Shown: positions 10,178 through 64,000, numbered from the stretch's first letter. The stretch: DNA of 64,000 nt from Macrostomum lignano (GCA_002269645.1 NIVC01001226.1:87835-151834), one strand, 5' to 3'. Translations and numbers: made by a program. The notes: generated from the letters alone by a model not told the origin.

Positions 10178-10211
10178 ATCGCACTGCGACCGAGGTCGCG
10201 GTGCGCAGTGC
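10168..10211 (+). promoter_or_regulatory. Putative -1 ribosomal frameshift signal: G_GAA_AAC, 6-nt spacer, 10-bp stem-loop
   Basis: Pol lies in the -1 frame and is open across the gag stop. GCACTGCGAC (10181-10190) pairs with GTCGCGGTGC (10195-10204), with one G-U pair. Confidence 0.65.
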
Positions 10212-13200: not shown

Positions 13201-13380
13201 ATCGATCGCCTCAAGCCGGCGCGACTTTCGCTTCCGAAGTCGGCTGTTCAGCCGGCCGCGAACTCGCTGCCGGAAAAAGCCGCCAAACCAAAGGAACCGG
13301 TGGACTCATCACCTCCTAGAGCGACCTCTAGCGGCCGCCGAGTCCAATTCCGACGCCATAATGATTACATTTATTATTAA
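10168..13380 (+). pseudogene. pol: Pol (protease-RT-RNaseH-integrase) interrupted by a single in-frame TGA at 11287-11289
   Basis: [10 protein letters not shown] protease, YIDD RT, TDAS/FDRELLA RNaseH, H..H..C..C and D-D-E integrase, GPY/F motif. ORFs 10201-11289 and 11311-13380 are in the same frame (DRL*THGL). Confidence 0.9.
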
Positions 13381-18150: not shown

Positions 18151-19489
18151 GGCCAACTTCTTGGGAACCGGAATTGATGGCGCACTCTGTAGACAATGCG
18201 CAACAGCAGAGTACAATAGAGTACGCTGTCAGTTTGCAAGAGCAGCATCAGATAGCGCGCTTCAAAGCTTAGGCGCAAACAAAGGCCACACCGCCGGCAG
18301 AGTCTGGGGTGCCAGCGTCAGCCAGCAGACAGTCGATGTAGTGCCGAGTCCTTGCCTGTCCCTGCCAGTAGGATGCCTGCAACGTAAGTAGCAGCACCTC
18401 CTGTACCGGCTCTAGACAGTAGGCCTCAGCGCGGATGACGTGGCCTGCCAGCTAGAGTTGCCGACGTCGCAGCAGATCGCTAGGACAGGCCAGGCCGGCG
18501 CAATGACAATGCGCAATTGATAGCAATAAGCCTAAATTAGTCTCTTTCTACTGTTCTGTATTGTCTGTACTTAAAAAGAATCCTATAGCCTATTGTCAAG
18601 ACTATTACATGGTGGGTAGTACTGTACATTATAGCCCATTGCCGATGTAACAAATTGCACGGATTGAGTTAGAACACTCTTTGAAACACACAGTTGTACT
18701 TAGACAATAAGCATTGTTGACAAAACATACTTGTCGCCATATTTAACATAGCTTGTTGCCAAAGTCACAATTTTTCATGTTGCCAAAATCAACTATTGCC
18801 AAAAAGCCTGGCACCCATTGGTCCTATATCTAATATAATATAGGATATTGGATATAAGTAGGGCCTATGATAGATAAGATAGGTAATGTTATTCATTGTC
18901 ATAAATCAATATATAGACATAGTATAGGCCTAGATTTTACATAGGCCCTCTATAAGTAATATGTCTAAATAGATTAATAGAGTCATAAAAACTATATAAT
19001 GATCCTATGGCTATAAGCCTAGGCCCTTATTGATATATTAATCTAGTCTAAGCCTAGTCTGATCTAGGTATATTAATAGTAAAAATATATAATATATATT
19101 TAATAATAATAAAAACTGTATTAATAACTAAAAAAGTAAGACAAGGCCTAAAAGTAAGATAACAATAAATTAAACAATATTTATCAATGTCAACTTTTCT
19201 TTTAAAAGCCTATATAGTTTTGCTCATTAAATTATTTTTGTTAAAAATAATAATTGTTAAGCCATAGTCTGGATCATGTTGGTTGCACATCTAAACAAAA
19301 ATCCAATAATTATAAATGCATGCCAAAAAATAGAGTGCATATCCATTCTCATAACTATGCTAGTGTTGCAACAATAAATGACCTTTACATTGTGAAAGTA
19401 AATTACTTTTTTAAATTGCATAATGGACCCTTTTTAGCAAATAATTTGGTTAATTTTTATGCTTTTTCGATAATACTAGGCCTATTCAC

Positions 19490-34000: not shown

Positions 34001-34748
34001 TCTTTACCTATCCCTTTACCTACCCATTTATCTACCCCTTTACCTTCCTATTTACCTACCCCTTTGCCTACCTCTTTACCTATCCCTTTACCTACCCATT
34101 TATCTACCCCTTTACCTTCCTATTTACCTACCCCTTTGCCTACCTATTTACCTACCCCTTTGCCTACCTCTTTACCTATCCCTTTACCTACCCATTTATC
34201 TACCCCTTTACCTTCCTATTTACCTACCCCTTTGCCTACCTCTTTACCTATCCCTTTACCTACCCATTTATCTACCCCTTTACCTTCCTATTTACCCACC
34301 CCTTTGCCTACTACAGGGCGAAGAATTCGAAGATCTAGACGAAATAATCGCCCGCTATGTGCAGCCAATGGCGGCCTACATTCGCGACATCAGCATGCAC
34401 AAGTATTACGTCAGGCCGGCGCCTGGCGCCTCCGGCGTCGCAGCTATCGACGACAGTTTGCGCCAAGCTAAACAGGCCAGGCCAACTACCATTCCCTACA
34501 GTCTGTCGGCTGTGACCAATATGCCTGGCAAATTTCTATTGGCCTACCTGCCTAGGAGTAATGTACACCGCGAGTACATCACTGTGCGGCCTGGCGGGCT
34601 GCGCTATAGGGGCAGGCAGTTTGCCAGCTTGAATCAGCTGCTAGCCTGGTTTAAGCAGCACTATAGAGAGCCGCCGCCTAGCGCTGCTAATGTGCCCGGT
34701 TCGGCCCTGATGACCCCGGCTGGCTCTGTGATTTCGGCTAGAATGTGA
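22017..34748 (+). CDS. SPT6: Transcription elongation factor / histone chaperone SPT6, 12 coding exons, 1693 aa. Exons: 22017-22893, 23674-24254, 24662-25012, 26382-26578, 26890-27100, 28401-28818, 29473-29759, 29934-30284, 30838-31350, 31832-32428, 32977-33243, 34317-34748
   Basis: All introns are GT-AG and phases join into one 5082-nt ORF. Recognisable SPT6 segments: acidic N-terminus, [22 protein letters not shown], YqgF-like region, [10 protein letters not shown] Hh[15 protein letters not shown]1 ([11 protein letters not shown]) and tandem SH2 ([10 protein letters not shown]...[15 protein letters not shown]). Confidence 0.95.
22905..23455. repeat. 39-bp minisatellite, ~14 copies, SPT6 intron 1
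   Basis: Unit CTGAGACTGACAGGCACTGGGGGCTGGGGCAGACAGACA; decays into AGAC-rich sequence up to ~23620. Confidence 0.95.
24350..24555. repeat. 33-bp minisatellite, ~6 copies, SPT6 intron 2
   Basis: Unit TCTGAGCGATTCCCTATGACCCACTCTTATCTA. Confidence 0.9.
25055..26312. repeat. 21-bp minisatellite, ~58 copies, SPT6 intron 3
   Basis: Unit GGATCTGAATCTCATAGCTCA. Confidence 0.95.
27110..28380. repeat. 30/32-bp minisatellite, SPT6 intron 5
   Basis: Core GTTCTGAGTTGGTGTCTAAC; period 30 at 27121-27180 and 32 at 28141/28173. Confidence 0.95.
28875..29400. repeat. 21-bp minisatellite decaying 3', SPT6 intron 6
   Basis: Unit TTCTTTCTTAGAATTTGAGTG. Confidence 0.85.
30315..30543. repeat. 28-bp minisatellite, ~8 copies, SPT6 intron 8
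   Basis: Unit CAGTTGCTGGGCCAGCCTCCCAGCTCCC; CAGTTG at 30318 and 30346. Confidence 0.9.
30545..30654. mobile_element. Truncated (right-half) copy of the 172-bp fold-back MITE, SPT6 intron 8
   Basis: GTCACGTGACTGCTCTCAGCCAATAG...GTTGCGCTTGTATG matches 16130-16218. Confidence 0.75.
31380..31750. repeat. 21-bp minisatellite, SPT6 intron 9
   Basis: Unit GGTTTGGGTCAGCTGGTTCAG; AGGGTTT at 31501, 31522, 31543. Confidence 0.9.
32530..32815. repeat. 23-bp minisatellite, SPT6 intron 10
   Basis: Unit AAAATACCCAATTAGATTCCTTT; ATTAGATT at 32704, 32727, 32750. Confidence 0.85.
33480..34310. repeat. 12/24-bp pyrimidine-rich minisatellite reaching the acceptor, SPT6 intron 11
   Basis: Unit CCTACCTCTCTACCTACCCCTTTA; TACCTCTC at 33661, 33685, 33709. 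Confidence 0.95.
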
Positions 34749-34983
34749 CACCTGTTTAATTCATTAATAAACTTAACTAAATTGTACTTTGTTTAGCGTT
34801 CATCAATCTGAGGATTTATTTGTTGCTGCCTGTGTGTGTTTTTTAATTTTTTTTTATAGTCGTAGTTTGGTTGTACTTTTGTTGCCCTTTTTTATACAGA
34901 AGCTTTGGGAGCATTGAATCAAACAATTCACCTTTATTGTTTGTAACAAGGTTCCGACCTTGAAATCATCTAGGGTCCTTGGG

Positions 34984-37710: not shown

Positions 37711-38438
37711 ACCTGTGGGGGGGGGGTAAGCATATGTCTGATGCGGATATCTCTACTTATAAAAATCAAAATAATATATAAAGTAGATGTGACACTTCCA
37801 ATAAAAGTTCAATTGGAACTTTTCAAAGTTCGGTTTGTTTAAGCGGTTTTGTGCGCTGCGGGGGGAGGGGTGGGCGGCAGCCGTCACGATTACGTCTCGC
37901 ACCACCTCGAACTCGTCTTGCTGGCTTCCTTTACTTTGTCCCTAGTCTTATCTTGTCTTACTCATTTGTGTCTATTGTTGCTTTGAAAGGTTAGGCGGTA
38001 GAAGCAGCCAATTAGAAGTGGACCTGCCCAGCCAGTTTCAAGTCGGATCAAGGACACCCTAAACCTGTATTTGGATTGGAATACTTTCGTGTTTTTCAGT
38101 TTTTGTTTTACTTTACTAGATTTATTATAACGGTAAACTTTGTTAGGTTTTAGAAGTGTTATTTTAAGTACTAGTACGAGTACGATTTCTATAAATTTAT
38201 GAACTTGGAATTCAAAATAGGCCTTTCGTGTACGTGTAGTAATTGTTGTCCATTCCAGAGTTCTAGAATTTTTTATGGGTCTCCATGGTCGACCACACCC
38301 CCTTTAAATGCCCGTACTAGTTTTGCTGTCTGCTTTTCTCTCCTTAAGAGCCAGAGCCTCAGGCCACGCCTCCAATTTCATATATCATTCAATCGTACCA
38401 ACTTTTTTATTCTCAGCCAAGCCGGCCAACCAACAGTC

Positions 38439-41400
38439 ATGCGTTCAAGCATTAGAAACATACTATCGTTAAATACGACAAAATTATCTATTCGGCGTTG
38501 CTTAGCAACAACTGACGCCTCAGCCGCGTCGTCTAGTTCGAATTGTTCAACGTCTTCGCCAAGTGCTGTCGCTGCTGGAAGCTTCCGTTTCGCTGATCTG
38601 TCAATCGAGCGAACCGAACAGCCCAAGCCGAAGCCGCCCAATGACAGTCTGGTGTTTGGCAGCCAGTTCTCCGATCACATGCTGTTGGCCAGGCATTCCA
38701 AGTCTGCCGCTGGTTGGATGGCGCCTCGCATTCAACCCTTGCAGAGTCTGCCGTTGCATCCGGCGTCCAAGTGCTTGCACTACGCTTTGGAGTGCTTCGA
38801 AGGATTGAAGGTTATAAATTTGTGACTGGGATGCTCAGTTTGATTGTATCAACTTGTAATGGGATTTTGATGTTGTAGGGATGAGATTCTGATGCTGTAG
38901 GGGTGAGATTTTGATGCTGTAGGGGTGAGATTCTGATGCTGTAGGGGTGAGATTCTGATGCTGTCGGGGTGAGATTCTGATGCTGTAGGGGTGAGATTCT
39001 GATGCTGTAGGGGTGAGATTCTGATGCTGTAGGGGTGAGATTCTGATGCTGTAGGGGTGAGATTCTGATGCTGTATGGGTGAGACTTTGATTCTGTATGG
39101 GTTAGATTTTGATGCTGTATGGGTGAGATTCTGATGCTGTAGGAGTGAGATTCTGATGCTGTAGGAGTGAGATTTTGATGCTATAGGGGTGAGATTCTAA
39201 TGCTGTATGGGTGCGATTCTGATGCTGTAGGGATGAGATTCTGATACTGTAGGGGTGAGATTCTGATGCTGTAGGGGTGAGATTCTGATGCTGTAGGGAT
39301 GAGATTTTGATGCTGTAGGTGAGATTCGATGCTGTTGGGGTGAGATTCGATGCTGTTGGGGTGAGATTCGATGCTGTAGGGGTGAGATTCGATGCTGTAG
39401 GGGTGAGATTCGATGCTGTAGGGGTGAGATTCGATGCTGTAGGGGTGAGATTTAGATACTGTAGGGATGAGATTCGGATGATGTAAGAGTGGTTTTAATG
39501 CTCTAGGAGAAGATTTTGGGACACTGTATGGGATAAGATTTTGGTGATGGACGAAGTTCCAACCCCAACCCCACAGGCTTTCCGTGGCGTTGACGGCCGG
39601 GTCCGCCTGTTCCGCCCCATGGAGAACTGCAAGCGGATGCTGCGCAGCGCCGAACGCTCAACCCTGGCCTCGTTCGACCCCGCCGAGCTGCACCGATGTC
39701 TGCGCGAGCTGATTCGGCTGGACGCCGACTGGGTGCCGGATTCGCGCGACTGCTCGCTGTACATCCGGCCTACCATGATCGCCGCCGAGCCGCGCATCTC
39801 CGTCGGGCCCGCCGAGGAGACCCTGCTGTGAGCCGCTCGTGTGTCCTGCTGCCCTCACGAACTCATTTATGAACTCACTTATGAACTCATTTATGAGCTC
39901 ATTCATGAACTCATTCATGAACTCACTCATGAACTCATTTATGAACTCACTCATGAACTCATTTATGAACTCATTCATGAACTCATTTATGAACTTACTC
40001 ATGAACTCATTTATGAGCTCATTCATGAACTCATTTATGAGCTCATTCATGAACTCATTCATAAACTCATTCATGAACTCTCTCATGAACTCACTCATGG
40101 ACTCACTCATAAACTCACTTATAAACTCAACTCATGAATTCACTCGACTGTTTACTTAATCACCCACGCAACCGTCACGGTTTCCTCCTGCGCTTTTTAT
40201 TACTCAGTTTCTTACGCAAAATCTTTCGCTAACCATTGGTTATAATTCAACTCCTAAGATGATAAATTCTATTACTATTCTGTTACCTCCCGCCACGAAA
40301 AATTCACTTACAGGTACGTGATCACGGGGCCGGTGGGGCCCTATTATCCAACCGGGTTCAAGCCCGTAACGCTGCTAGCCGATCCAACTTATTGCCGAGC
40401 TTGGCCGGGTAAATTTTATGACTAACTGATTCTAATGCTTTTATACTACTTGTTGATTGGAGTAGTATCAGCTAGGAATATGAATAAAGTGTCTTATCTT
40501 TTAGCGTGTTGTAATATGCGTTTTAGTTGATTTTGCGGCTGGCTGTTACAGTAGGTGGTACACTTGAATGTTAGAACTCACTGGCTGTTTAATACGGGTT
40601 ATATTGTGTTACAGAACTTACAGCACAGTATGTTTAATGTTGGGTCTCACAGGTGTTATGTGTTATAGCTGGTGTTACACATGTCATTATTTAGTGTTAC
40701 AGGTGTTGTTATTGGTGTTACAGGTGTTCTGAATAGTGTTACATGTGTTATAAACGGTGTTACAGGTGTTCTGAATAGTGTTACATGTGTTACGAATGGT
40801 GTTACAGGTGTTATGATTGGTGTTATGATTAGTGTTACGAATGGTGTTACAGTTGTTATGTTGGTGTTATGATTAGTGTTACAGGTGTTTGAGCATAAGG
40901 ATAAACCTCTCCCTAACCTGCCCCTATTCTCCTCACCCAACCACCAGGCGGCGTTGGCAACAACAAAATGGGCGCGAACTACGGACCTACCTGCTACGTA
41001 CAGTTGCAGGCCGCCGCCCAGGGCTGCCAACAGGTGCTGTGGCTATACGGGCCCGAGCACCGGCTAACAGAGGTTGGCACCATGAATTTGTTCATATTCT
41101 GGCGCAGCAAAGACACTGGCAAGCCTCAGCTGGTGACGCCGCCGTTAAACAGCGGATTAATCCTACCCGGCATTGTTCGGGACAGCCTATTGCGTCTAGC
41201 TCGCGAATGGAACGAATGGGAAGTATTAGAACGGGACATCACTATGGGCGAACTAATTGAAGCTATCGATAGCGGCCGGCTAATGGAAATGTTCGGCTCT
41301 GGCACCGCTTGCATTGTTAGCCCGGTTAGCGGAATTAAATACGACGGCAAAGTAATCCAGGTGCCCACTATGAGCCAGGGCGCCCCGGTTACTATGCGTT

Positions 41401-41471
41401 TCTTTAAGACGCTGACGGATGTTCAGTACGGCCGGATCAAGGATCACCCCTGGGCTGAGATTGTCGCCTGA
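38439..41471 (+). CDS. BCAT: Branched-chain amino acid aminotransferase, 4 coding exons (38439-38810, 39577-39827, 40314-40408, 40948-41471), 413 aa, probable mitochondrial presequence
   Basis: GT-AG introns and consistent phases. Motifs [28 protein letters not shown] (PLP lysine), EVGTMN, ILPGIVR and FGSGTAC. The N-terminus is Arg/Ser-rich and acid-poor. Confidence 0.95.
38870..39480. repeat. 22-bp minisatellite, BCAT intron 1
   Basis: Unit GTGAGATTCTGATGCTGTAGGG. Confidence 0.93.
39855..40140. repeat. 12-bp minisatellite, BCAT intron 2
   Basis: Unit (C/T)ATGAACTCA(T/C)T. Confidence 0.93.
40640..40890. repeat. Degenerate GTGTTA/GGTGTTACA satellite, BCAT intron 3
   Basis: Repeated GGTGTTAC words. 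Confidence 0.7.
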
Positions 41472-49789: not shown

Positions 49790-50770
49790 CAGGTTTGCTA
49801 TAATCCCAAGTCAAGCTTGCAATGATCCCAGTCAAGTTTGAAATGATCTCCTAATCAGGTTTAAAATGATCCCAATCAGGTTTGCAATGATCCTCCCAGT
49901 CAGGTTAGCAACAATCCCCAGTTAAGTGGTATAATAATCCCACAAAAAGGTTTGAAATGATATCCCAATCAGGTTTGCAATGATCCCAGCCAGGTTTAAA
50001 ATCATACATGCGCAACAGTCAGCAAAGTCAACCAATTTGATGGCCAACCAAGGAAGTCACAAAAATACCCACCCAAAAAATTACCCAAGTAGTAGTACTA
50101 AGTAGCTGACAAGGCATTTTGGCTTTATAAGACAGTCATAGTTACTCCTGTCATTTATCCAAAATTGCATTAATTTTGCTTTAGGGTTTTTTTACATGTA
50201 AGTTGTATTTTGGCCAAAAACTATGTCGCATTTTTGTTAAAACTAAGTTGCATGGCCGACCAAATTTTGGAGGTTGTGCATGCATGTTTAAAATGATCCC
50301 CCAGTCAGGTTTAAATTGATCCCTAGTCAGGTTTGCAATGATCCCCTAGTCATTTTTGCAATAATCCCAGTCAGGTTTGAAATGATCTTACAGTCAGGTT
50401 TGAAATGATCTTCTAGTCAGGTTTGCAATGATCCCAGTTGGGTTTGCAATAATCCCCTAAGCAAGTTTAAAATGATCCTAGTCAGGTTTGCAATTATCCC
50501 CTAATCATTTTTGCAATAGTCCCAGTCAGTTTCGAAATGATCCAAGTCTGGGTTATAATGATCCCCTAGTCAGGTTTGTAATAATCTCATAAAAAGATTT
50601 AAAATGATCTCCCAGTCGGGTTTGTAATGATCCTAGTCAGGTTTACAATGATCCTAGTCAAGTTTAAAATAATCCCCCAATCAGGTTTAAAATGATCCCA
50701 GTCAGGTTTACAATGATCCTAGTCAGGTTTAAAATGATCCCTCAATCAGGTTTGAAATGATCCTAGTCAA
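49790..50770. repeat. Degenerate ~22-24-bp satellite (ATGATCCCAGTCAGGTTTGCA) in two blocks
   Basis: Blocks at ~49790-50000 and ~50290-50770. Confidence 0.8.
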
Positions 50771-53766
50771 TCAATGGGAAATGATCCCATTAATTGTTAT
50801 TTCATTTGATATTTTGCTTTTAATTGTTGTTTCTATGATTCATTGGAATAAATTTGTTATATAACATATTTTACCATGTGGCAATTTTGTTATATTGCTA
50901 TTTTGACATGTCACTTTTCTATGCATGGCTGTTTTGATATATATTTCAAGCATTGCATTGTTACACTGCACTATGTTGCACTAAAGGCCGCTTCACAGAA
51001 AATGTGCTATGCCACAGGGTCATTTTGAAAACATGCCAGATAGCCATCTGCGATTTAGCAACTTTTTCCAATAAGGCCAAAGTGAAGGCAATCAATCAAA
51101 AAGCAAAAACTCTTTCAAACCTAGTGATTTGTTTACTTTGATACAATAAATATAGAAGCACTCTATATATGATAGATGATAATGTATCTGTTTATTTAGC
51201 CAAGAATATAAACCACCATTAGGCAAGATCTCTGTAGCTGTAATCTATAACCAAATACAGATAAAATTGATATAGGAATGATAGGATAAAAGCTAATTTT
51301 ACTTTTGTTGCATAGTAATAGTGCTATGGGGTTTTTTTTCGTCCATAACTTGGGTGCGATTTCGCACCCTGTGCTAGATTTCAGGGTGCGATTTTCAAGA
51401 CCAGGATGCGCTGCACTTAGATGTCCATAACAGTAAAACACTAAATTGTAAAACCTGCATCACATCCTTGCAAAAATTTGGGTGCACTTTTCGCACCCTG
51501 AGTCAAATTTCAGGGTGCGATTTTTAAGACCAGGATGCTAAATGCTATTTGCACCCATTTGCACAAAAAAACCTAGAATAGTGCTGTGGGTCAGACTTGT
51601 AGATGTTGCAAGCCAGATCTGGTCCATGTGCCAGTTTTCTAACCCCTGGTCTAAAGCATATGCTAGCAAACTCTGGCCTTTGCCTCTTTCTCTCTGTCCC
51701 TTTGAAATTTCTCTCTTCTTTCTTTCTCCTTTCTTTTCTTATCTATCATCTCATTTCTTTGTCATTTATTCATTCCTCTCTCTTCCCTCATCTCCTTTCT
51801 CTCTCCTCTCTTTTGGTGTCTCTTTCCCTCTTCTCTTTCTCTTCTCCCTCTCTTTACTTAGGAGTCCATAGCAAACAAATTTGTACATACCCAGACACAC
51901 AGAGTTTCCATTTTTTAAAGTTAAGATCTATAGCCTCTTAGAATCTATTTTGACTACTTATATAGTCACCATATCAATAACAGCTGCCTATTTAAGAGTC
52001 AACCTTAGGCTTAGAGGGCATAAGAAAACTGCAGTTAATATTTTTCTCAAGTTTTTTATTATAGTCAATGTCTAACTTTTTCCTCTGATAATAAACATAG
52101 TTTCTATATATTAAATGTTTTTTATTGGGAAACAAAGCTAACCTGTTAAAAAGTAAAAAAGAAAGAATTTTATCATAATTTAAGTGTATTTACTTAAATA
52201 TATAGGTTAAGTCTTCAAAAAATGTTTATTGTCAAAATTTGTACAAATATCAAAAAAAAATTTATAGTGCTTATAAACCATCTAATGTATTGCCTATGTC
52301 TATGACTAGTAAGCAAAGACTTAATCTTTAGAACATTCAACTTAGTCTATTTCCTGCTTTTGGATCTAGATTTTATTCTTATTATTGTAAAGCAATGTAA
52401 TACAATAACACAAACTAAAGATAAAGATTGAACATAAGAAATATATATGAGCAAAAAATTTATTCATATAGGTTATCTTTAAGACTAGAAATGTATGCCA
52501 GTGTACACGTCAGTCAAAATAAACCATTATTATTTAGAAAACAGCCCTATAAGGTAATTAAAACAAAACCTTAAGCATATACTAGTATAATTTTTTTGAA
52601 AATATTTTTCTAAAAAATTTCTATAATAAAGTACTAGTTTAGTATGTTTTATGTAGTGGCATACCTAAGATTTTAAAATAATAGGATGTATCTAAAAAAA
52701 TTTCTGTCAAAGAAAGTAGTTTTTTATGATCTTTTGCTTTATATATATAGTAAAAAAAGTACCTATACCATTAATAAGTTGTTCAGACATATTAGTAGCA
52801 ATATGCCATATATGTGTAGTGTCTAGATGTGTTTTAATTGTGCCTACTTATATGTAAAAATGTCTTTATGGTGCACAAATATAAAAAACAATAAAAAGTT
52901 AGATAAATTAACTGTTGCATTTTAATGGTAAAGCAGTTGTCATTTATTTGTATAGTTTTTGTTTTATGTAACATTTGAGCAATATATATAAAAAAATATT
53001 TGGTTAACTATATAGACTTTAGTGAGTCCTTTGAAAAAAACATTTCTTAGAGAGCTAGATGCTTCATATCTTTATCAAATCTCTATAAAGCTGCAAGTAT
53101 TATTTAAAATAAATAAAGTTTTGAGCATAAAAAAAATTACAAGTAGTAAAATGGTCATTGGTCATCAAAGGCATTGCATTTAGGCTAATAGAAGACAAAA
53201 AATGTCATATAAAATAATTGTTATATGACATCTTGTATGATAAAAAGTGTTTTTATTTTTTAATGTTAATTTCTAAATAAAGTAAATTTAGCAAATCTAT
53301 TGAGCCATTCATATATGTATTTTCAAACATTTAATAGAAAAGATTAATATTCTTGAAGATAAGATTCTTTTCTGTCAGTTAGATTATTAAAACTATATTC
53401 TGACAGATATTTTAACTAACAGGTTTTTCTTAACTGTTAGTATTACCCTTTTTATTGTCATAATGTTGTTTTAAATATAAATTTTGGAACTTTACAAAAA
53501 TTAAAATGCTCTAGTTGGAAGCAGCTAATAAATGAATAATGTAGTGTCTGCTTTGTTATATTTTATTTATGCTACCAGTTGACACGTGGATATTTAAAAT
53601 TGTAATGTTTAGTTTATTTATAAGTGAAGGCTGATTAAAATATAAAAAATTAATGCTACTGGTTTTAAACGTTAAATGCACAGAAAAATGCATCTAAATA
53701 CATCCGTTGTTTGCTATGTTTCCTTAAACATTTTATTATTTTTTATGTGCTACTTTTAGTAGTTAA

Positions 53767-54018
<252 letters not shown>

Positions 54019-55455
54019 TCCCGGCTTGATCTAATGCTCATTGCTTGTTGCTTTTTTTTCCTATGTATCTTTTGCGTCTGAATAAATACTATATTACTGC
54101 CATTGTGACAACAACTGTAATATGAGTACCCAACTGAAATTGGCAAGTTTATTGGTGTCAATACTGCCAATTAATAACATTTTAATATTACCATTAATAT
54201 TGCATTCTAACTCAAATTCGTTTTTGTTTGACTTTTGTGTAAACTTCTTGTCAATGTTAAGCATTGCTTTTATTTTAATTTTAAAAATAAAAATAAACTT
54301 TGTTTTAACTAAGCAAAAGGGAGAAAAAAAATCAAACGTTTTCGACTTCGAATTGGGACACTAGGATTGTCTGCCTAGCTTAGAGAACAGCAAATAATAC
54401 TAAATTTATAATACATCAACTTTAATAGCTATGAAGACAAAAAAAGGTTTATTTTATTTATTTATCAACATCCGGTTTAGTGGTTGGTTATTAAATTGGA
54501 AATAAACTATTGGTGTGCTTTAGTCGTCGTTTTTTTAAATAATTTTTTTAATAATGCTTTCCTTGGTTAAGTGGCCAAACTATCAATTAGCTTTCCAACC
54601 GAACATTTGACCGAATTTCTAAACTAGGCCAGCCTAACTGCCCTCGCTCTGTCCTGCCTGTGTCGTCGGGGCTTGACCCTGTCGTCGCTGCCGCAAGGTC
54701 AGTGCAGTACTGGCTACGTCAGTGTGACTGCTACGCTTCTGGCCAAGCCATGTAAGTCGAATCATTAATTTAATATTTTGTTCAAAAGCTCTTACTCACA
54801 ATTTCTTCTTTCGCACGCCTTGGTCGTAAAATTCCGTGTTAAAAGTACATGCCATCATTGCACGGTATTGGGTAGCTTACAGTTTCAATGCGGCCTACAA
54901 GGTAACGGCTTGTGCTGTATAAGAAGTATGATACGCTGCGGCTTCTCGGGTACACTCGTTCATCAGTCGGCAGTCATAGAATACTGTACAGTGTACATGT
55001 ACAAACAAGTGAAATCCATCTTGTCCGTCTCCTATTGTCGGCGTTCGCACATTCACTAGGCCGCGTACAAGTCAATGTACTGTACAACTCTAACCATCGA
55101 CTTCTTGGACTCCTTGGATCGACTCGGGCTGTCTGTGCATAGCAGATTTCAACAAATTGTAGGTTTGCGGTCATCCTTGTCTGTCACATACCGAGTTGCC
55201 TTTGTCTGTGCTGTGCCTCTTTCTAGCGTTTATGTCGTGCAGAATTTAAACTTCTGATGTCGTGTTACACGTGCATGTACGAAATCGCCTGTGGAAGCCG
55301 CGTTACACATATGTACGGAAAATCGCCCTTGGTTCTATGTGCATGTACATATGTATGTCGGGATACACGTACGAAATCGCCCTTAGTTGGATGTCGTGTT
55401 ACACACTTGCACACGTGTCTGTACATCTTGACTGCACGTAACTATAATTAAGTAC

Positions 55456-55671
55456 ATGTACGCCTTCAACCCATCGACCTACAAAACAGCAAAGAGCACA
55501 AAGAAAAAGTCGTCTGCAACAAGGACATCACCGGAGACCGACGAAACACAATCAGCTGCAGCCAACAATGACACCGCAAAACATGTGAATCAGCCCGCGT
55601 CACCTACTGCGTCAGCAAGCGGCATGAAATCTGCTACTGATAAGCCAGCTGCCAGAAAGAGGAGGCACTGA
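55456..55671 (+). CDS. Possible small low-complexity basic ORF (71 aa)
   Basis: A/S/T/K-rich, ends KPAARKRRH, and is more GC-rich than its flanks. No homology recognised. Confidence 0.2.
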   Translation: MYAFNPSTYKTAKSTKKKSSATRTSPETDETQSAAANNDTAKHVNQPASPTASASGMKSATDKPAARKRRH

Positions 55672-56337
55672 TTCGAAAGCAAGTGATGTCAAGTTAACTA
55701 TTCTTAAAAATTGGCATTCAAAAGTAACCATACACTACTACTACCACCCATACTACACGAGACTGTATATGTTCCATCCAGTCATTTATGCAGTACATAC
55801 ATGTATCCTATAATTAGCTAAAGCCAACTTTACTTACGTTAGCATACGTAATTGCAGTTAGACTGCTCATATGCGCATCATCTCTGTATTATTACATAGA
55901 AAATTGCAATAAATTTTGAATAGATTAGACTGACAGTGGGGCTGTTTCAGTTTATGTATAAGAGTTAGACATTTTGTAGTGCAATAACTAGCTACTGGGC
56001 TTTTGTGTTCTAATCTGTGGAAATGGAGTGTACGGCTCGTAAATGTATAATTTCTAGGGATCCCTTGCGAGCTGGTCAGGTCATCAGGTTTATCAATGCA
56101 ACCAGCGTCGATCATTAGTTGTATGAGTAGAAAGAGTGAAATTCCTTTGGTATAAAGTTAGCTAAGTTATACTCTGGTTGGTAGCACTTAAAAATTGTAG
56201 CTAGCTACTTGATTAAGATGCACACAGACTTCGTTCGCTGCTGTGTGTGTGTTGTTGTGTGAGCACTATATGACTTGCTTACTGTCGCCCCGATTGCAGC
56301 TCTAAGCAGCTCTCAAGCACAAAAAGCAAAACACAGA

Positions 56338-56478
56338 ATGCCAGCCAAGCAGAACCAGCAGCAGGGAGCCGGCAAGCAGCAGGCAGCCGATGCCAACAAG
56401 GACGCCAAGCAGCAAAAGCAGCAGCAACAACAACAGCAGGCTGGTGGCGCTGCCGCCAAGGCCGGTCAGAAGAAGTGA
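56338..56478 (+). CDS. Microprotein A copy 1, 46 aa: MPAKQNQQQGAGKQQAADANKDAKQQKQQQQQQQAGGAAAKAGQKK
   Basis: Acceptor-like TTGCAG at 56294-56299, A at -3, GC3-rich codons, paralogy to ORF B. Confidence 0.7.
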   Translation: MPAKQNQQQGAGKQQAADANKDAKQQKQQQQQQQAGGAAAKAGQKK

Positions 56479-57202
56479 TGCGATTTCAGAGAGATCAATT
56501 GTTAGGTGTGCTCTGCACCGCATGACAGCCAGGCCTACTATTGGCGTGACTGAGTGGAACTCTGAGCTATCTCTATACCTGTACATACAGTATACTATAA
56601 TCTGTCCGCATTAGCGTATCGTCTTTGTTGGGGCTAAAGAGTCGCAGCACCCAGCTCTGAAACTGCAAGGTTACTTACTGTATTCTGTACTGTACTAACC
56701 TTACTCACGTGCTGACGAAAGCTTATAGTTGTAAATTGATCCATTGAAAAAAGTTGTTTGATTGTAGAATAATTACAGTAGCATTTCCAAATTACATATT
56801 GGACAGTATTTTTAAAGCAAGCAGGTGTTTTCGGCTCTCGTTCTTTAAATGCTCTCTGTTTCCCTATATGCTTAGCATGTTTTGTGTTAGATCAGCAGTT
56901 GCAGACAGAGAAAGGGGGCATTACTTGTATTTGGCTTGATATAGCATCCTCTAGATTTCGTTGTCCAGCACATCCAACTAGAGGCTAGATATGCACCAAT
57001 GGTCCTTGTAGAGCTGCACTGCTCCAATAAGCGGTTAAAGAAGAAGAAGTGCCCGTGAGAATATATCTAGATAGTTTTTCTAATGAGGATGTACAGCCAG
57101 CTAGCTATACTTGAAGTTGACGTTGGTCACGTTGCAAACCTCAGCTGCTCGCTTCTCAAATTGCAGCTCCAAGCATCAGCTTCCTAATCTCAACAGACAA
57201 AC

Positions 57203-57325
57203 ATGCCTGCCAAGAAAGCCGCCGCCGACAAGAAGGCCGCCTATGCCAGCAAGGACGCCAAGCAGCAGCCGGAAAAAGCCGAGGGCGAGCAGGCCGCTGC
57301 CAAGGGCGGTCATAAGAAGAAGTGA
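57203..57325 (+). CDS. Microprotein B copy 1, 40 aa: MPAKKAAADKKAAYASKDAKQQPEKAEGEQAAAKGGHKKK (Y14; D in the other copies)
   Basis: Acceptor-like TTGCAG at 57161-57166, A at -3, GC3-rich codons. Confidence 0.7.
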   Translation: MPAKKAAADKKAAYASKDAKQQPEKAEGEQAAAKGGHKKK

Positions 57326-58205
57326 TCGATGTGCGTTGCGGATCGCGCTATACCAACCTGTATGCTGGCTTGATCGCGGCGCTCCTACCGACCTGTACGA
57401 GTTGCTGGATGCCTGCTGATCAAACTGCAACTTATAGTGAACTGTAATTACATGTGCTGGCCGTTTACTAATCAATGTTGCATCATACTCAGTTACATAC
57501 TACACAACTGCAGTCTCTACAGCTCTGCACTGTAAAGCGCAGACGCATTTTATACAGTACGTAAATCGTAGCCTGTCAGCCATGCTCTATACTATGGTAC
57601 CAGCTGCTCTGTTCTGATGGGCAGTCATGTACTTGTCGTAAATTACATTGTTGTACTGGGTGCATCAGTTACTTACAAAGTTGTTGCAACAACCAACAAT
57701 CGTTTTTCGGCTTGAGCTCTACTTTTACCAATATTTTTGCTGCTTCCTAGTCACGTATATAGTTTCATGCTCCTCAAGGCTTAGGGGCCTCTCGCTCACA
57801 GGCTGACAGTGGGGCTGTTTCAGTTTATGTATAAGAGTTAGACATTTTGTAGTGCAATAACTAGCTACTGGGCTTTTGTGTTCTAATCTGTGGAAATGGA
57901 GTGTACGGCTCGTAAATGTATAATTTCTAGGCATCCCTTGCGAGCTGGTCAGGTTTATCAGGTTTATCAATGCAACCAGCGTCGATCATTAGTTGTATGA
58001 GTAGAAAGAGTGAAATTCCTTTGGTAGTTAGCTAAGTTATACTCTGGTTGGTAGCACTTAAAAATTGTAGCTAGCTACTTGATTAAGATGCACACAGACT
58101 TCGTTCGCTGCTGTGTGTGTTGTTGTGTGAGCACTATATGACTTGCTTACTGTCGCCCCGATTGCAGCTCTAAGCAGCTCTCAAGCACAAAAAGCAAAAC
58201 ACAGA

Positions 58206-58346
58206 ATGCCAGCCAAGCAGAACCAGCAGCAGGGAGCCGGCAAGCAGCAGGCTGCCGATGCCAACAAGGACGCCAAGCAGCAAAAGCAGCAGCAACAACA
58301 ACAGCAGGCTGGTGGCGCTGCCGCCAAGGCCGGTCAGAAGAAGTGA
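58206..58346 (+). CDS. Microprotein A copy 2
   Basis: Same protein; synonymous GCA>GCT change at an Ala codon. Confidence 0.7.
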   Translation: MPAKQNQQQGAGKQQAADANKDAKQQKQQQQQQQAGGAAAKAGQKK

Positions 58347-59070
58347 TGCGATTTCAGAGAGATCAATTGTTAGGTGTGCTCTGCACCGCATGACAGCCAG
58401 GCCTACTATTGGCGTGACTGAGTGGAACTCTGAGCTATCTCTATACCTGTACATACAGTATACTATAATCTGTCCGCATTAGCGTATCGTCTTTGTTGGG
58501 GCTAAAGAGTCGCAGCACCCAGCTCTGAAACTGCAAGGTTACTTACTGTATTCTGTACTGTACTAACCTTACTCACGTGCTGACGAAAGCTTATAGTTGT
58601 AAATTGATCCATTGAAAAAAGTTGTTTGATTGTAGAATAATTACAGTAGCATTTCCAAATTACATATTGGACAGTATTTTTAAAGCAAGCAGGTGTTTTC
58701 GGCTCTCGTTCTTTAAATGCTCTCTGTTTCCCTATATGCTTAGCATGTTTTGTGTTAGATCAGCAGTTGCAGACAGAGAAAGGGGGCATTACTTGTATTT
58801 GGCTTGATATAGCATCCTCTAGATTTCGTTGTCCAGCACATCCAACTAGAGGCTAGATATGCACCAATGTTCCTTGTAGAGCTGCACTGCTCCAATAAGC
58901 GGTTAAAGAAGAAGAAGTGCCCGTGAGAATATATCTAGATAGTTTTTCTAATGAGGATGTACAGCCAGCTAGCTATACTTGAAGTTGACGTTGGTCACGT
59001 TGCAAACCTCAGCTGCTCGCTTCTCAAATTGCAGCTCCAAGCATCAGCTTCCTAATCTCAACAGACAAAC

Positions 59071-59193
59071 ATGCCTGCCAAGAAAGCCGCCGCCGACAAG
59101 AAGGCCGCCGATGCCAGCAAGGACGCCAAGCAGCAGCCGGAAAAAGCCGAGGGCGAGCAGGCCGCTGCCAAGGGCGGTCATAAGAAGAAGTGA
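59071..59193 (+). CDS. Microprotein B copy 2
   Basis: Intact 123-nt ORF. Confidence 0.7.
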   Translation: MPAKKAAADKKAADASKDAKQQPEKAEGEQAAAKGGHKKK

Positions 59194-60078
59194 TCGATGT
59201 GCGTTGCGGATCGCGCTATACCAACCTGTATGCTGGCTTGATCGCGGCGCTCCTACCGACCTGTACGAGTTGCTGGATGCCTGCTGATCAAACTGCAACT
59301 TATAGTGAACTGTAATTACATGTGCTGGCCGTTTACTAATCAATGTTGCATCATACTCAGTTACATACTACACAACTGCAGTCTCTACAGCTCTGCACTG
59401 TAAAGCGCAGACGCATTTTATACAGTACGTAAATCGTAGCCTGTCAGCCATGCTCTATACTATGGTACCAGCTGCTCTGTTCTGATGGGCAGTCATGTAC
59501 TTGTCGTAAATTACATTGTTGTACTGGGTGCATCAGTTACTTACAAAGTTGTTGCAACAACCAACAATCGTTTTTCGGCTTGAGCTCTACTTTTACCAAT
59601 ATTTTTGCTGCTTCCTAGTCACGTATATAGTTTCATGCTCCTCAAGGCTTAGGGGCCTCTCGCTCACAGGCTGACAGTGGGGCTGTTTCAGTTTATGTAT
59701 AAGAGTTAGACATTTTGTAGTGCAATAACTAGCTACTGGGCTTTTGTAGACTAATCTGTGGAAATGGAGTGTACGGCTCGTAAATGTATAATTTCTAGGG
59801 ATCCCTTGCGAGCTGGTCAGGTCATCAGGTTTATCAATGCAACCAGCGTCGATCATTAGTTGTATGAGTAGAAAGAGTGAAATTCCTTTGGTATAAAGTT
59901 AGCTAAGTTATACTCTGGTTGGTAGCACTTAAAAATTGTAGCTAGCTACTTGATTAAGATGCACGCAGCTACATCGTTCGCTGCTGTGTGTGTTGTTGTG
60001 TGAACACTATATGACTTGCTTACTGTCGCCCCGATTGCAGCTCTAAGCAGCTCTCAAGCACAAAAAGCAAAACACAGA

Positions 60079-60219
60079 ATGCCAGCCAAGCAGAACCAGC
60101 AGCAGGGAGCCGGCAAGCAGCAGGCAGCCGATGCCAACAAGGACGCCAAGCAGCAAAAGCAGCAGCAACAACAACAGCAGGCTGGTGGCGCTGCCGCCAA
60201 GGCCGGTCAGAAGAAGTGA
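60079..60219 (+). CDS. Microprotein A copy 3
   Basis: Intact 141-nt ORF. Confidence 0.7.
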   Translation: MPAKQNQQQGAGKQQAADANKDAKQQKQQQQQQQAGGAAAKAGQKK

Positions 60220-60947
60220 TGCGATGCGATTTCAGAGAGATCAATTGTTAGGTGTGCTCTGCACCGCATGACAGCCAGGCCTACTATTGGCGTGACTGAG
60301 TGGAACTCTGAGCTATCTCTATACCTGTACATACAGTATACTATAATCTGTCCGCATTAGCGTATCGTCTTTGTTGGGGCTAAAGAGTCGCAGCACCCAG
60401 CTCTGAAACTGCAAGGTTACTTACTGTATTCTGTACTGTACTAACCTTACTCACGTGCTGACGAAAGCTTATAGTTGTAAATTGATCCATTGAAAAAAGT
60501 TGTTTGATTGTAGAATAATTACAGTAGCATTTCCAAATTACATATTGGACAGTATTTTTAAAGCAAGCAGGTGTTTTCGGCTCTCGTTCTTTAAATGCTC
60601 TCTGTTTCCCTATATGCTTAGCATGTTTTGTGTTAGATCAGCAGTTGCAGACAGAGAAAGGGGGCATTACTTGTATTTGGCTTGATATAGCATCCTCTAG
60701 ATTTCGTTGTCCAGCACATCCAACTAGAGGCTAGATATGCACCAATGTCCTTGTAGAGCTGCACTGCTCCAATAAGCGGTTAAAGAAGAAGAAGTGCCCG
60801 TGAGAATATATCTAGATAGTTTTTCTAATGAGGATGTACAGCCAGCTAGCTATACTTGAAGTTGACGTTGGTCACGTTGCAAACCTCAGCTGCTCGCTTC
60901 TCAAATTGCAGCTCCAAGCATCAGCTTCCTAATCTCAACAGACAAAC

Positions 60948-61070
60948 ATGCCTGCCAAGAAAGCCGCCGCCGACAAGAAGGCCGCCGATGCCAGCAAGGA
61001 CGCCAAGCAGCAGCCGGAAAAAGCCGAGGGCGAGCAGGCCGCTGCCAAGGGCGGTCATAAGAAGAAGTGA
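60948..61070 (+). CDS. Microprotein B copy 3
   Basis: Intact 123-nt ORF. Confidence 0.7.
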   Translation: MPAKKAAADKKAADASKDAKQQPEKAEGEQAAAKGGHKKK

Positions 61071-61955
61071 TCGATGTGCGTTGCGGATCGCGCTATACCA
61101 ACCTGTATGCTGGCTTGATCGCGGCGCTCCTACCGACCTGTACGAGTTGCTGGATGCCTGCTGATCAAACTGCAACTTATAGTGAACTGTAATTACATGT
61201 GCTGGCCGTTTACTAATCAATGTTGCATCATACTCAGTTACATACTACACAACTGCAGTCTCTACAGCTCTGCACTGTAAAGCGCAGACGCATTTTATAC
61301 AGTACGTAAATCGTAGCCTGTCAGCCATGCTCTATACTATGGTACCAGCTGCTCTGTTCTGATGGGCAGTCATGTACTTGTCGTAAATTACATTGTTGTA
61401 CTGGGTGCATCAGTTACTTACAAAGTTGTTGCAACAACCAACAATCGTTTTTCGGCTTGAGCTCTACTTTTACCAATATTTTTGCTGCTTCCTAGTCACG
61501 TATATAGTTTCATGCTCCTCAAGGCTTAGGGGCCTCTCGCTCACAGGCTGACAGTGGGGCTGTTTCAGTTTATGTATAAGAGTTAGACATTTTGTAGTGC
61601 AATAACTAGCTACTGGGCTTTTGTAGACTAATCTGTGGAAATGGAGTGTACGGCTCGTAAATGTATAATTTCTAGGGATCCCTTGCGAGCTGGTCAGGTC
61701 ATCAGGTTTATCAATGCAACCAGCGTCGATCATTAGTTGTATGAGTAGAAAGAGTGAAATTCCTTTGGTATAAAGTTAGCTAAGTTATACTCTGGTTGGT
61801 AGCACTTAAAAATTGTAGCTAGCTACTTGATTAAGATGCACGCAGCTACATCGTTCGCTGCTGTGTGTGTTGTTGTGTGAACACTATATGACTTGCTTAC
61901 TGTCGCCCCGATTGCAGCTCTAAGCAGCTCTCAAGCACAAAAAGCAAAACACAGA

Positions 61956-62096
61956 ATGCCAGCCAAGCAGAACCAGCAGCAGGGAGCCGGCAAGCAGCAG
62001 GCAGCCGATGCCAACAAGGACGCCAAGCAGCAAAAGCAGCAGCAACAACAACAGCAGGCTGGTGGCGCTGCCGCCAAGGCCGGTCAGAAGAAGTGA
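61956..62096 (+). CDS. Microprotein A copy 4
   Basis: Intact 141-nt ORF. Confidence 0.7.
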   Translation: MPAKQNQQQGAGKQQAADANKDAKQQKQQQQQQQAGGAAAKAGQKK

Positions 62097-62817
62097 TGCG
62101 ATGCGATTTCAGAGAGATCAATTGTTAGGTGTGCTCTGCACCGCATGACAGCCAGGCCTACTATTGGCGTGACTGAGTGGAACTCTGAGCTATCTCTATA
62201 CCTGTACATACAGTATACTATAATCTGTCCGCATTAGCGTATCGTCTTTGTTGGGGCTAAAGAGTCGCAGCCCAGCTCTGAAACTGCAAGGTTACTTACT
62301 GTATTCTGTACTGTACTAACCTTACTCACGTGCTGACGAAAGCTTATAGTTGTAAATTGATCCATTGAAAAAAGTTGTTTGATTGTAGAATAATTACAGT
62401 AGCATTTCCAAATTACATATTGGACAGTATTTTTAAAGCAAGCAGGTGTTTTCGGCTCTCGTTCTTTAAATGCTCTCTGTTTCCCTATATGCTTAGATGT
62501 TTTGTGTTAGATCAGCAGTTGCAGACAAGAAAGGGGGCATTACTTGTATTTGGCTTGATATAGCATCCTCTAGATTTCGTTGTCCAGCACATCCAACTAG
62601 AGGCTAGATATGCACCAATGTCCTTGTAGAGCTGCACTGCTCCAATAAGCGGTTAAAGAAGAAGAAGTGCCCGTGAGAATATATCTAGATAGTTTTTCTA
62701 ATGAGGATGTACAGCCAGCTAGCTATACTTGAAGTTGACGTTGGTCACTTGCAAACCTCAGCTGCTCGCTTCTCAAATTGCAGCCAAGCATCAGCTTCCT
62801 AATCTCAACAGACAAAC

Positions 62818-62938
62818 ATGCCTGCCAAGAAAGCCGCCGCCGACAAGAAGGCCGCCGATGCCAGCAAGGACGCAAGCAGCAGCCGGAAAAAGCGAGGGCG
62901 AGCAGGCCGCTGCCAAGGGCGGTCATAAGAAGAAGTGA
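62818..62938 (+). pseudogene. Microprotein B copy 4, with two 1-bp deletions (pseudogene or consensus error)
   Basis: GACGCAAGC vs GACGCCAAGC and AAAAGCGAG vs AAAAGCCGAG; lies in a stretch with many small deletions. Confidence 0.5.
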
Positions 62939-63813
62939 TCGATGTGCGTTGCGGATCGCGCTATACCAACCTGTATGCTGGCTTGATCGCGGCGCTCCTA
63001 CCGACCTGTACGAGTTGCTGGATGCCTGCTGATCAAACTGCAACTTATAGTGAACTGTAATTACATGTGCTGGCCGTTTACTAATCAATGTTGCATCATA
63101 CTCAGTTACATACTACACAACTGCAGTCTCTACAGCTCTGCACTGTAAAGCGCAGACGCATTTTATACAGTACGTAAATCGTAGCCTGTCAGCCATGCTC
63201 TATACTATGGTACCAGCTGCTCTGTTCTGATGGGCAGTCATGTACTTGTCGTAAATTACATTGTTGTACTGGGTGCATCAGTTACTTACAAAGTTGTTGC
63301 AACAACCAACAATCGTTTTTCGGCTTGAGCTCTACTTTTACCAATATTTTTGCTGCTTCCTAGTCACGTATATAGTTTCATGCTCCTCAAGGCTTAGGGG
63401 CCTCTCGCTCACAGGCTGACAGTGGGGCTGTTTCAGTTTATGTATAAGAGTTAGACATTTTGTAGTGCAATAACTAGCTACTGGGCTTTTGTCTAATCTG
63501 TGGAAATGGAGTGTACGGCTCGTAAATGTATAATTTCTAGGCATCCCTTGCGAGCTGGTCAGGTTCATCAGGTTTATCAATGCAACCAGCGTCGATCATT
63601 AGTTGTATGAGTAGAAAGAGTGAAATTCCTTTGGTAGTTAGCTAAGTTATACTGTGGTTGGTAGCACTTAAAATTCTAGCTAGCTACTTGATTAAGATGC
63701 ACAGACTTCGTTCGCTGCTGTGTGTGTGTTGTTGTGTGAGCACTATATGACTTGCTTACTGTCGCCCGATTGCAGCTCTAAGCAGCTCTCAAGCACAAAA
63801 AGCAAAACACAGA

Positions 63814-63954
63814 ATGCCAGCCAAGCAGAACCAGCAGCAGGGAGCCGGCAAGCAGCAGGCAGCCGATGCCAACAAGGACGCCAAGCAGCAAAAGCAGCAG
63901 CAACAACAACAGCAGGCTGGTGGCGCTGCCGCCAAGGCCGGTCAGAAGAAGTGA
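63814..63954 (+). CDS. Microprotein A copy 5
   Basis: Intact 141-nt ORF. Confidence 0.7.
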   Translation: MPAKQNQQQGAGKQQAADANKDAKQQKQQQQQQQAGGAAAKAGQKK

Positions 63955-64000
63955 TGCGATTTCAGAGAGATCAATTGTTAGGTGTGCTCTGCACCGCATG

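Follow-up and report, generated by a model that had tools for sequence, protein, structure and literature searches.

A tandem array of 1.87-kb units, each carrying two small open reading frames (smORFs), here named A and B, occupies the end of a 64,000-nucleotide stretch of the Macrostomum lignano genome (NIVC01001226.1:87835-151834; hereafter, the window). The array of two-smORF cassettes is real and transcribed, and it is an orphan locus with putative peptide products. On balance, we favour the view that the array specifies two orphan microproteins, both hydrophilic and basic, that are polycistronically expressed and amplified for dose; translation of the A and B peptides is considered somewhat more likely than not.

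Structure of the tandem array

Families of direct repeats with a start-to-start spacing of 1858-1877 bp extend from approximately 55.93 kb to the end of the window. When cut at a fixed anchor, this region was resolved into a total of 4.3 head-to-tail units, which are approximately 99% identical to each other:

55930-64000, plus strand: tandem array, four full units (1868-1877 bp) and 585 bp of a fifth, truncated at the window end
55930-57802: unit 1, 1873 bp
57803-59670: unit 2, 1868 bp
59671-61547: unit 3, 1877 bp
61548-63415: unit 4, 1868 bp
63416-64000: partial unit 5, 585 bp

In the alignment of the cut units, variation is confined to a few dozen columns, and no further unit copy was detected within the window by blastn using the unit as query. 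These results bear out an earlier note on this DNA, made from the sequence alone, in which a cassette of approximately 1.87 kb repeated at least 4.3 times was described; on contig L002 of assembly Mlig_3_7, at least 11.5 units are present. Because the array reaches the contig end on every contig, all copy numbers are lower bounds.

Compared with its sister units, unit 4 contains approximately 10 deletions of 1-2 nt, two of which fall in ORF B. These deletions are probably long-read assembly errors in the repeat, the alternative being decay that yields pseudogenised copies. The database entry PAA46468.1 (contig L003, 442-657) likewise represents a B copy with a 1-nt frameshift. The broken fourth B copy was omitted from the earlier note, as were the splice architecture of the array and a TMA7 gene located 1.9 kb upstream (see below).

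ORFs A and B and their predicted peptides

ORF A specifies a protein of 46 amino acids, MPAKQNQQQGAGKQQAADANKDAKQQKQQQQQQQAGGAAAKAGQKK, that is identical in all five copies, and ORF B specifies a protein of 40 amino acids, MPAKKAAADKKAADASKDAKQQPEKAEGEQAAAKGGHKKK, for which three intact copies are present, including copy B1 with a D14Y substitution. Each ORF is preceded by a short leader that directly follows a splice acceptor:

56300-56337, plus strand: leader of A, 38 nt, AUG-free, after the acceptor GATTGCAG; further starts at 58168, 60041, 61918, and 63776
56338-56478, plus strand: ORF A copy 1, 46 codons and stop
58206-58346, 60079-60219, 61956-62096, and 63814-63954, plus strand: ORF A copies 2-5
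57167-57202, plus strand: leader of B, 36 nt, AUG-free, after the acceptor AAATTGCAG; further starts at 59035, 60912, and approximately 62782 (damaged unit 4)
57203-57325, plus strand: ORF B copy 1, 40 codons and stop, D14Y
59071-59193 and 60948-61070, plus strand: ORF B copies 2-3
62818-62938, plus strand: ORF B copy 4, frame broken by two 1-nt deletions

The GC content of ORFs A and B is 62-63%, and the 100-nt bins lying over the ORFs range from 0.55 to 0.64, with values of 0.30-0.51 in the remaining bins. By our own count, peptide A contains 16 Gln, 11 Ala, 8 Lys, and 2 Asp residues (Lys, 17%; Gly, 10.9%), and peptide B contains 12 Ala, 11 Lys, 3 Asp, and 3 Glu residues (Lys, 27.5%; Ala, 30%; Gly, 7.5%). 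The two tiny GC-rich ORFs per unit that the earlier note had listed, with the same residue counts, were thus confirmed. Neither peptide contains Cys, Leu, Ile, Val, Phe, Trp, Arg, Thr, or a signal peptide, and the sole Tyr residue is found in copy B1. Peptides A and B are predicted to have molecular masses of 4.85 and 4.12 kDa, isoelectric points (pI) of 10.2 and 9.8, grand averages of hydropathy (GRAVY) of -1.81 and -1.48, and net charges of +6 and +5, respectively. In the AlphaFold2 model of peptide B, a single helix spans residues 3-33 (predicted local distance difference test score, 73) without a tertiary fold. In terms of Gly content and GRAVY, both peptides fall among the hydrophilins, which, following Garay-Arroyo et al. 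in 2000, are reportedly characterized by >6% Gly and very high hydrophilicity. The GC content at third codon positions (GC3) is 0.74 in A, 0.80 in B, and 0.77 in the upstream TMA7 gene, and ranges from 0.56 to 0.68 in the other exons of the window.

Paralogy of A and B

A and B are paralogous, and their likeness is limited to the acceptor, the leader, and the ORF. In the alignment, the similarity at the DNA level begins at ATTGCAG/CTCYAAGCA (the slash indicates the splice site), approximately 36-38 nt 5' of the ATG, and continues through the ORF to AAGAAGTGAT; it is lost right past the stop codon, where the 3' flanks of A and B are unrelated. The two proteins share 23 identical columns, with gaps of 4, 3, and 1 codons that are all in frame, and have in common an initial MPAK, a central KDAKQQ, and a terminal AAAKxGxKK. 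Synonymous codon differences (CCA/CCT, GCA/GCC, CAA/CAG, and GCT/GCC) are present at residues kept in both proteins. Since the acceptor, leader, frame, start, and stop have all been kept, A and B are regarded as duplicates of one mini-gene, and the A-B pair would then have been amplified later, after the mini-gene duplication.

Transcription and splicing of the array

The gene models of assembly Mlig_3_7 were built from RNA sequencing (RNA-seq) data using StringTie, TACO, and a de novo transcriptome, with ORFs called by TransDecoder, and the model boundaries were cut at peaks of spliced leader (SL)-containing and poly(A)-adjacent reads (PMC5730564). These transcript-derived models show that the plus strand of the array is transcribed and that its transcripts are spliced; transcripts over the ORFs, the lack of which the earlier note had named as evidence against its proposal, are thus documented. 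The description of the microproteins as abundant in the same note is not supported; the expression cut-off for novel transcripts in Mlig_3_7 was 0.5 reads per kilobase per million (RPKM) (PMC5730564). The exons and introns concerned are as follows:

54628-54751, plus strand: non-coding exon E0 of 124 nt, 5' of the array, AUG-free in its spliced form, donor CCAT/GTAAGT
57326-57556, plus strand: 3' untranslated region (UTR) of B up to the 5' splice site TTATACA/GTACGT; last exon base in later units at 59424, 61301, and 63169
57557-58167, plus strand: intron of the B-3'UTR-to-A transcript, which would be an outron if A is trans-spliced

Exon mapping revealed that, in PAA92363.1 (Mlig001540g3), splicing connects E0 with the start of the A exon (56300), and that PAA49765.1 (Mlig030344g1) begins in the B 3'UTR and has the donor after 57556 joined to the next A acceptor, with the removal of 611 nt. 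The A acceptor is a genuine 3' splice site, and the precursor reaches at least from B to the A exon that follows it, and to A from a point 5' of the array. The stop codon of A lies 688 nt from the B acceptor, and that of B lies 842 nt from the A acceptor of the following unit; these distances are counted from stop codons and not from poly(A) sites.

The top motif of trans-splice acceptors in M. lignano is [T/C]TNCAG (PMC8629364). In every intact unit, this motif is matched by the acceptors of A and B alike, which both read TTGCAG. The annotation of M. lignano commonly includes 'transcriptional units' in which several trans-splice sites are present (PMC5730564, PMC8629364). Two 5'-partial models, encoding 58 and 56 amino acids, start 2 nt past the A acceptor and just past an AG located 7 nt downstream, respectively. 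Together with the cutting of model boundaries at SL-read peaks, these starts, which are such as SL trimming would yield, suggest SL trans-splicing at the A acceptor. If the terminal AUG of the SL were joined to the exons, its frame would run for 2 codons in the A exon and 7 codons in the B exon before meeting a stop, and A or B would be left as the first substantial ORF.

The expectation of the earlier note that standard annotation would miss such short ORFs was correct for B and incorrect for A. ORF A is present in GenBank at least four times as a 'hypothetical protein', always with a spurious N-terminal extension derived from the UTR or an upstream exon; these extensions are artefacts of the choice of the longest ORF. 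ORF B appears only as a frameshifted copy, the 71-aa product of which is PAA46468.1.

A gene model of 153 amino acids on L002 (17552-27111) extends from an A acceptor to the A stop codon five units on. No single-intron solution was found for its exon structure, and 201 formal two-intron solutions were obtained; this model may be a multi-mapping artefact. A long repetitive protein generated by splicing out of the stop codons was considered and rejected, as the frames close across the acceptors and the annotated coding sequences end at the A stop codon.

Versions of the array on other contigs

The same array was identified on three contigs (L001, L002, and L003) of the M. lignano assembly Mlig_3_7 (GCA_002269645.1). 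The units on L003 are 99.1-99.7% identical to those of the window, and those on L001 and L002 are 97.2% identical. The flanks on L001 and L002 are collinear with positions 44.5-55.9 kb of the window, sharing 89-96% identity, and from these collinear, diverged flanks the arrays on L001 and L002 are taken to be allelic or homeologous versions. This matches the redundancy of the polyploid M. lignano genome, as described in two publications (PMC5730564; PMC10468722).

Over 1875 nt, 30 substitutions and 7 indels distinguish the versions. Of the substitutions, 1 lies in the 264 nt of the ORFs, compared with 29 in 1611 nt elsewhere (one-sided Fisher p = 0.06), and the sole indel within an ORF is 3 nt long and located in B. 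When the model-supported exon parts were compared with the remainder, the numbers were 3 substitutions in 567 nt versus 27 in 1308 nt (p = 0.008). ORFs A and B vary between versions about as little as the TMA7 ORF used as a benchmark, which has 1 substitution in 195 nt versus 2.4-5.8% in its flanks.

In a pattern spotted post hoc, the substitutions between versions cluster at approximately 3% in two blocks, with approximately 0.4% in two other blocks. The low-divergence blocks correspond to unit coordinates 1-274 and 873-1555 (e.g. 58168-58436 and 59035-59717 in the window). The second of these, the B block, runs approximately 300 nt beyond the documented donor and may mark how far an unspliced B mRNA really extends. 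The arrays of the two versions are closer to each other (97.2%) than are the non-coding flanks at 53258-55929 (2.4-5.8% substitutions and many indels), and on L002 eleven units are identical save for one 2-nt deletion. This homogeneity suggests concerted evolution or collapse to an assembly consensus.

Searches for related proteins and RNAs

A profile of A and B, searched against 1.84 billion representative proteins, yielded only three matches, PAA49765.1, PAA92363.1, and PAA46468.1, all of which are 'hypothetical proteins' of M. lignano (GCA_002269645.1). No Pfam family, including TMA7, LEA_4, linker-histone, and protamine, was matched by A or B at E <= 10, and sequence searches of PDB with A and B gave no match. 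The array could not be assigned to any of the described protein or RNA families tested, in agreement with the earlier note, whose author recognized no known family. No candidates were obtained in a word-indexed homologue search with B, probably owing to a limit of the index for low-complexity sequences, which is suspected because one database entry, P0003, has 27 residues in common with B. In a metagenome scan for relatives, 600 pattern matches were found and 0 were confirmed. Look-ups of exact products returned no record for A, B, TMA7, or either of two antisense ORFs. Mlig001540, Mlig030344, and Mlig029044 were not found in the papers, supplements, and expression tables searched, and a search for a relevant Macrostomum microprotein study was likewise negative. 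The LDPTGXY motif of tarsal-less/pri/mlpt is absent from A and B.

Two other classes of element were rejected. An internal transposon fragment, a match to which the earlier note had regarded as evidence against its proposal, was not found: eight longer ORFs of the unit (46-102 amino acids, both strands) gave no credible Pfam match, and no dispersed copy is present in the window. A known non-coding RNA array (SL RNA, small nuclear RNA, small nucleolar RNA, or 5S RNA) was rejected because no Rfam match was detected at the gathering threshold in the window or at E <= 1 in the region 54.5-60.2 kb. The M. lignano SL sequence was not found at <=3 mismatches.

Proposed expression of the array and alternative explanations

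We propose that the array is one plus-strand transcription unit of two paralogous mini-genes that were amplified as a 1.87-kb cassette, each mini-gene comprising a TTGCAG acceptor, a 36-38-nt AUG-free leader, an ORF of 46 or 40 codons, and a 3'UTR. RNA polymerase would start near E0 and read through many units, and the A and B acceptors would serve mostly for SL trans-splicing, by which the precursor would be cut into many monocistronic mRNAs with A or B as the first real ORF. With read-through and SL resolution of many units, the dose would be set by copy number. The products would be basic, very hydrophilic, helix-prone peptides of 4.8 and 4.1 kDa without a hydrophobic core, which in bulk may act as a hydrophilin-type soluble shield or as a coat for polyanions (RNA, ribosome, and chromatin). 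Such a bulk, dose-dependent role is a weakly supported suggestion, and roles in sperm chromatin or in association with the ribosome are less likely. The candidate roles offered in the earlier note (Hero- or LEA-like protectant, sperm chromatin protein, or transglutaminase substrate) are likewise conjectures based on composition. The most far-reaching form of this proposal, a mega-operon in which >10 alternating copies of the two orphan smORF cistrons lie on one precursor that is resolved by the SL to give a very high microprotein output, is put forward as a tentative suggestion.

Several observations weigh against the proposed production of A and B from a trans-spliced precursor. The ORF regions are of low complexity (CAG/GCC), with several frames open on both strands, and no homologue outside M. 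lignano was detected in the profile, word-indexed, and metagenome searches. The conservation test for the ORFs alone (p = 0.06) is not significant, and the B 3'UTR is as well conserved as the ORFs, so that the comparison of versions cannot split coding from RNA-level constraint. Neither AATAAA nor ATTAAA occurs on the plus strand anywhere in the array, which leaves the ends of the monocistronic mRNAs unexplained. In addition, the cis-spliced E0-to-A and B-to-A models indicate that the acceptors are not exclusively used in trans, and the near-identity of the L002 units may reflect the assembly consensus rather than biology.

The array could instead be a transcribed and spliced tandem repeat or long non-coding RNA, in which A and B are chance frames in GC-rich CAG/GCC DNA and no peptide is made. 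We consider this possible but rather doubtful. It would account for the overlapping frames that are open on both strands across the same stretches, the UTR exon sequence conserved like the ORFs, the failure to find orthologues, and the lack of a canonical poly(A) signal in the unit, and it accords with the tandem repeats that make up 15% of the genome and with the low RPKM cut-off of 0.5 (PMC5730564). However, A and B keep the start ATGCCNGCCAAG, the C-terminus, and the stop codon despite three indels, all of which are multiples of 3, and their likeness ends after the stop; furthermore, the leaders and E0 contain no upstream AUG, GC3 and codon choice are like those of the highly biased TMA7 gene, the lone intra-ORF indel between versions is 3 nt in length, and no Rfam family was detected even at E <= 1. 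It is unlikely that the transcript is a long cis-spliced RNA (E0-A-B-A-B...) of which no more than the first ORF, or a small number of ORFs through re-initiation, would be translated, the array then being a neutral repeat expansion with little gain in dose. Both documented junctions are indeed cis, one joining E0 to A and the other joining the 3'UTR of B to the A exon of the following unit, and AATAAA/ATTAAA is absent from the units, but two models begin at the A acceptor or the adjacent AG, with boundaries set at SL-read peaks, both acceptors match the trans-splice motif, and neither a donor downstream of the A exon nor cis-splicing to the B acceptor could be demonstrated.

Two further explanations concern the nature of the peptides. 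The absence of any linker-histone or protamine family match and of Arg, the six acidic residues in B, the 16 Gln residues in A, and net charges of only +5 and +6 make it improbable that the peptides compact chromatin as H1-tail-like or sperm nuclear basic proteins, e.g. in the hermaphrodite germline, although B consists of 27.5% Lys and 30% Ala, and histone and sperm-protein genes are often arranged in tandem arrays. The PAKKAAADKKAA stretch of B also presumably resembles the C-terminal tails of histone H1. The idea that A and B are fast-evolving TMA7 duplicates acting on the ribosome arises from the location of TMA7 1.9 kb upstream on the same strand, the similar size, charge, and hydrophilicity of the products, the shared ending ...AAGAAGTGAT of all three genes, and a weak tblastn alignment (E of approximately 6). 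It is highly improbable: Pfam TMA7 (PF09072) has no match to A or B at E <= 10, hhalign of the A/B profile gave probabilities of 0.4% against the TMA7 of the window and, with 4 columns aligned, 1.1% against a profile of 30 TMA7 sequences, and neither A nor B contains the GGKKKPLK and GP motifs that are invariant in TMA7. As far as sequence comparison can tell, TMA7 ancestry of A and B appears close to refuted.

Neighbourhood of the array

The following other features were identified in the window:

53824-54018, plus strand: TMA7, intact single-exon gene, 64 amino acids (Pfam E = 5e-20), AATAAA 64 nt past the stop
55456-55671, plus strand: Ser/Thr/Ala/Lys-rich ORF of 71 amino acids, within the E0-to-A1 intron just 5' of the array, no Pfam match
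50286-50769: degenerate repeat, 22 tandem copies of 22-23 nt with 73% matches, located upstream of TMA7 and also on the homeologous contig
38199-41471, plus strand: exons of a class IV (branched-chain amino acid) aminotransferase
22017-34750, plus strand: SPT6-like gene (Tex central region, HHH domains)
16938-18278, minus strand: MULE-type transposase fragments, weak Pfam match (E = 1.4e-3)
9272-13380, plus strand: long terminal repeat (LTR) retrotransposon

The best database match of TMA7 is only 75% identical, and because its exact product is not on record, the gene appears to be unannotated in the published M. lignano proteome. TMA7, treated here as a neighbour of the array, thus appears to be another overlooked short gene. 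The introns and parts of the long ORFs of the SPT6-like gene are full of perfect minisatellites (e.g. 22898-23467, 25175-26245, and 33432-34300). The gag-like, protease/reverse transcriptase, and RNase H/integrase ORFs of the LTR retrotransposon (Pfam RT_RNaseH, Integrase_H2C2, and rve) are long and open, and the element looks recently active. No tRNA genes or Rfam matches were found in the window.

Implications and comparison with known systems

If the peptides are made, the array would be a natural case in which copy-number amplification is combined with trans-splicing for the mass production of microproteins, in an animal amenable to transgenesis and RNA interference, and the orphan family would join the few abundant disordered 'shield' proteins (Hero, LEA, SERF, and TMA7). 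Were the tentatively suggested mega-operon real, A and B would constitute a class of peptides, protective or polyanion-coating, that is specific to this lineage, amplified for dose, and undescribed in flatworms or elsewhere. If the peptides are not made, the array is a further transcribed tandem repeat in a genome containing 15% tandem repeats. The locus also illustrates how annotation by the longest ORF misreports smORF genes, with A bearing false N-terminal extensions and B essentially unannotated.

Among known systems, the SL operons of M. lignano and Caenorhabditis elegans, like the array, contain same-strand genes, each preceded by a [T/C]TNCAG acceptor, and a long precursor is documented at the array by the cis-spliced models. 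The stop-to-acceptor distances in the array, 688 and 842 nt, may correspond to the intergenic spacing of under approximately 1 kb in such operons. M. lignano operons, however, comprise 2-9 different, mostly conserved genes, whereas the array consists of two orphan smORF cistrons alternating at least 11 times, with presumed use of the SL. In the tandem arrays of trypanosomatids, identical small genes are likewise arranged head to tail and copy number equals dose; each copy is freed by trans-splicing upstream of the ORF, which would presumably also apply to the M. lignano array. The trypanosomatids belong to another phylum, and the M. lignano array differs in having introns, cis-splicing, and far smaller products. 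The arthropod gene tarsal-less/polished rice/mille-pattes resembles the array in that one transcript contains several repeated short ORFs for related peptides. Unlike A and B, these peptides are 11-32 amino acids long, carry LDPTGXY, and are produced from one mature mRNA without amplification of a kilobase-scale cassette.

With respect to the products, TMA7, SERF, Hero, and the LEA group 3 proteins/hydrophilins are, like A and B, Gly/Ala/Lys-rich proteins of 4-7 kDa with a pI of approximately 10 and a GRAVY of < -1.4, and they similarly lack a hydrophobic core and are predicted to form a lone helix or to be disordered. This likeness is physical and chemical only, and no sequence relationship was found. 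The type I antifreeze arrays of the winter flounder also encode short Ala-rich helical peptides and have been tandemly amplified for dose, but the Thr-based 11-residue ice-binding periodicity of the flounder peptides is missing in A and B, M. lignano inhabits warm intertidal waters, and the flounder peptides are not homologous to A and B. By analogy, the mechanism proposed for the array most closely resembles an SL trans-spliced operon or a trypanosomatid-style array, and its concept most closely resembles the polycistronic smORF genes.

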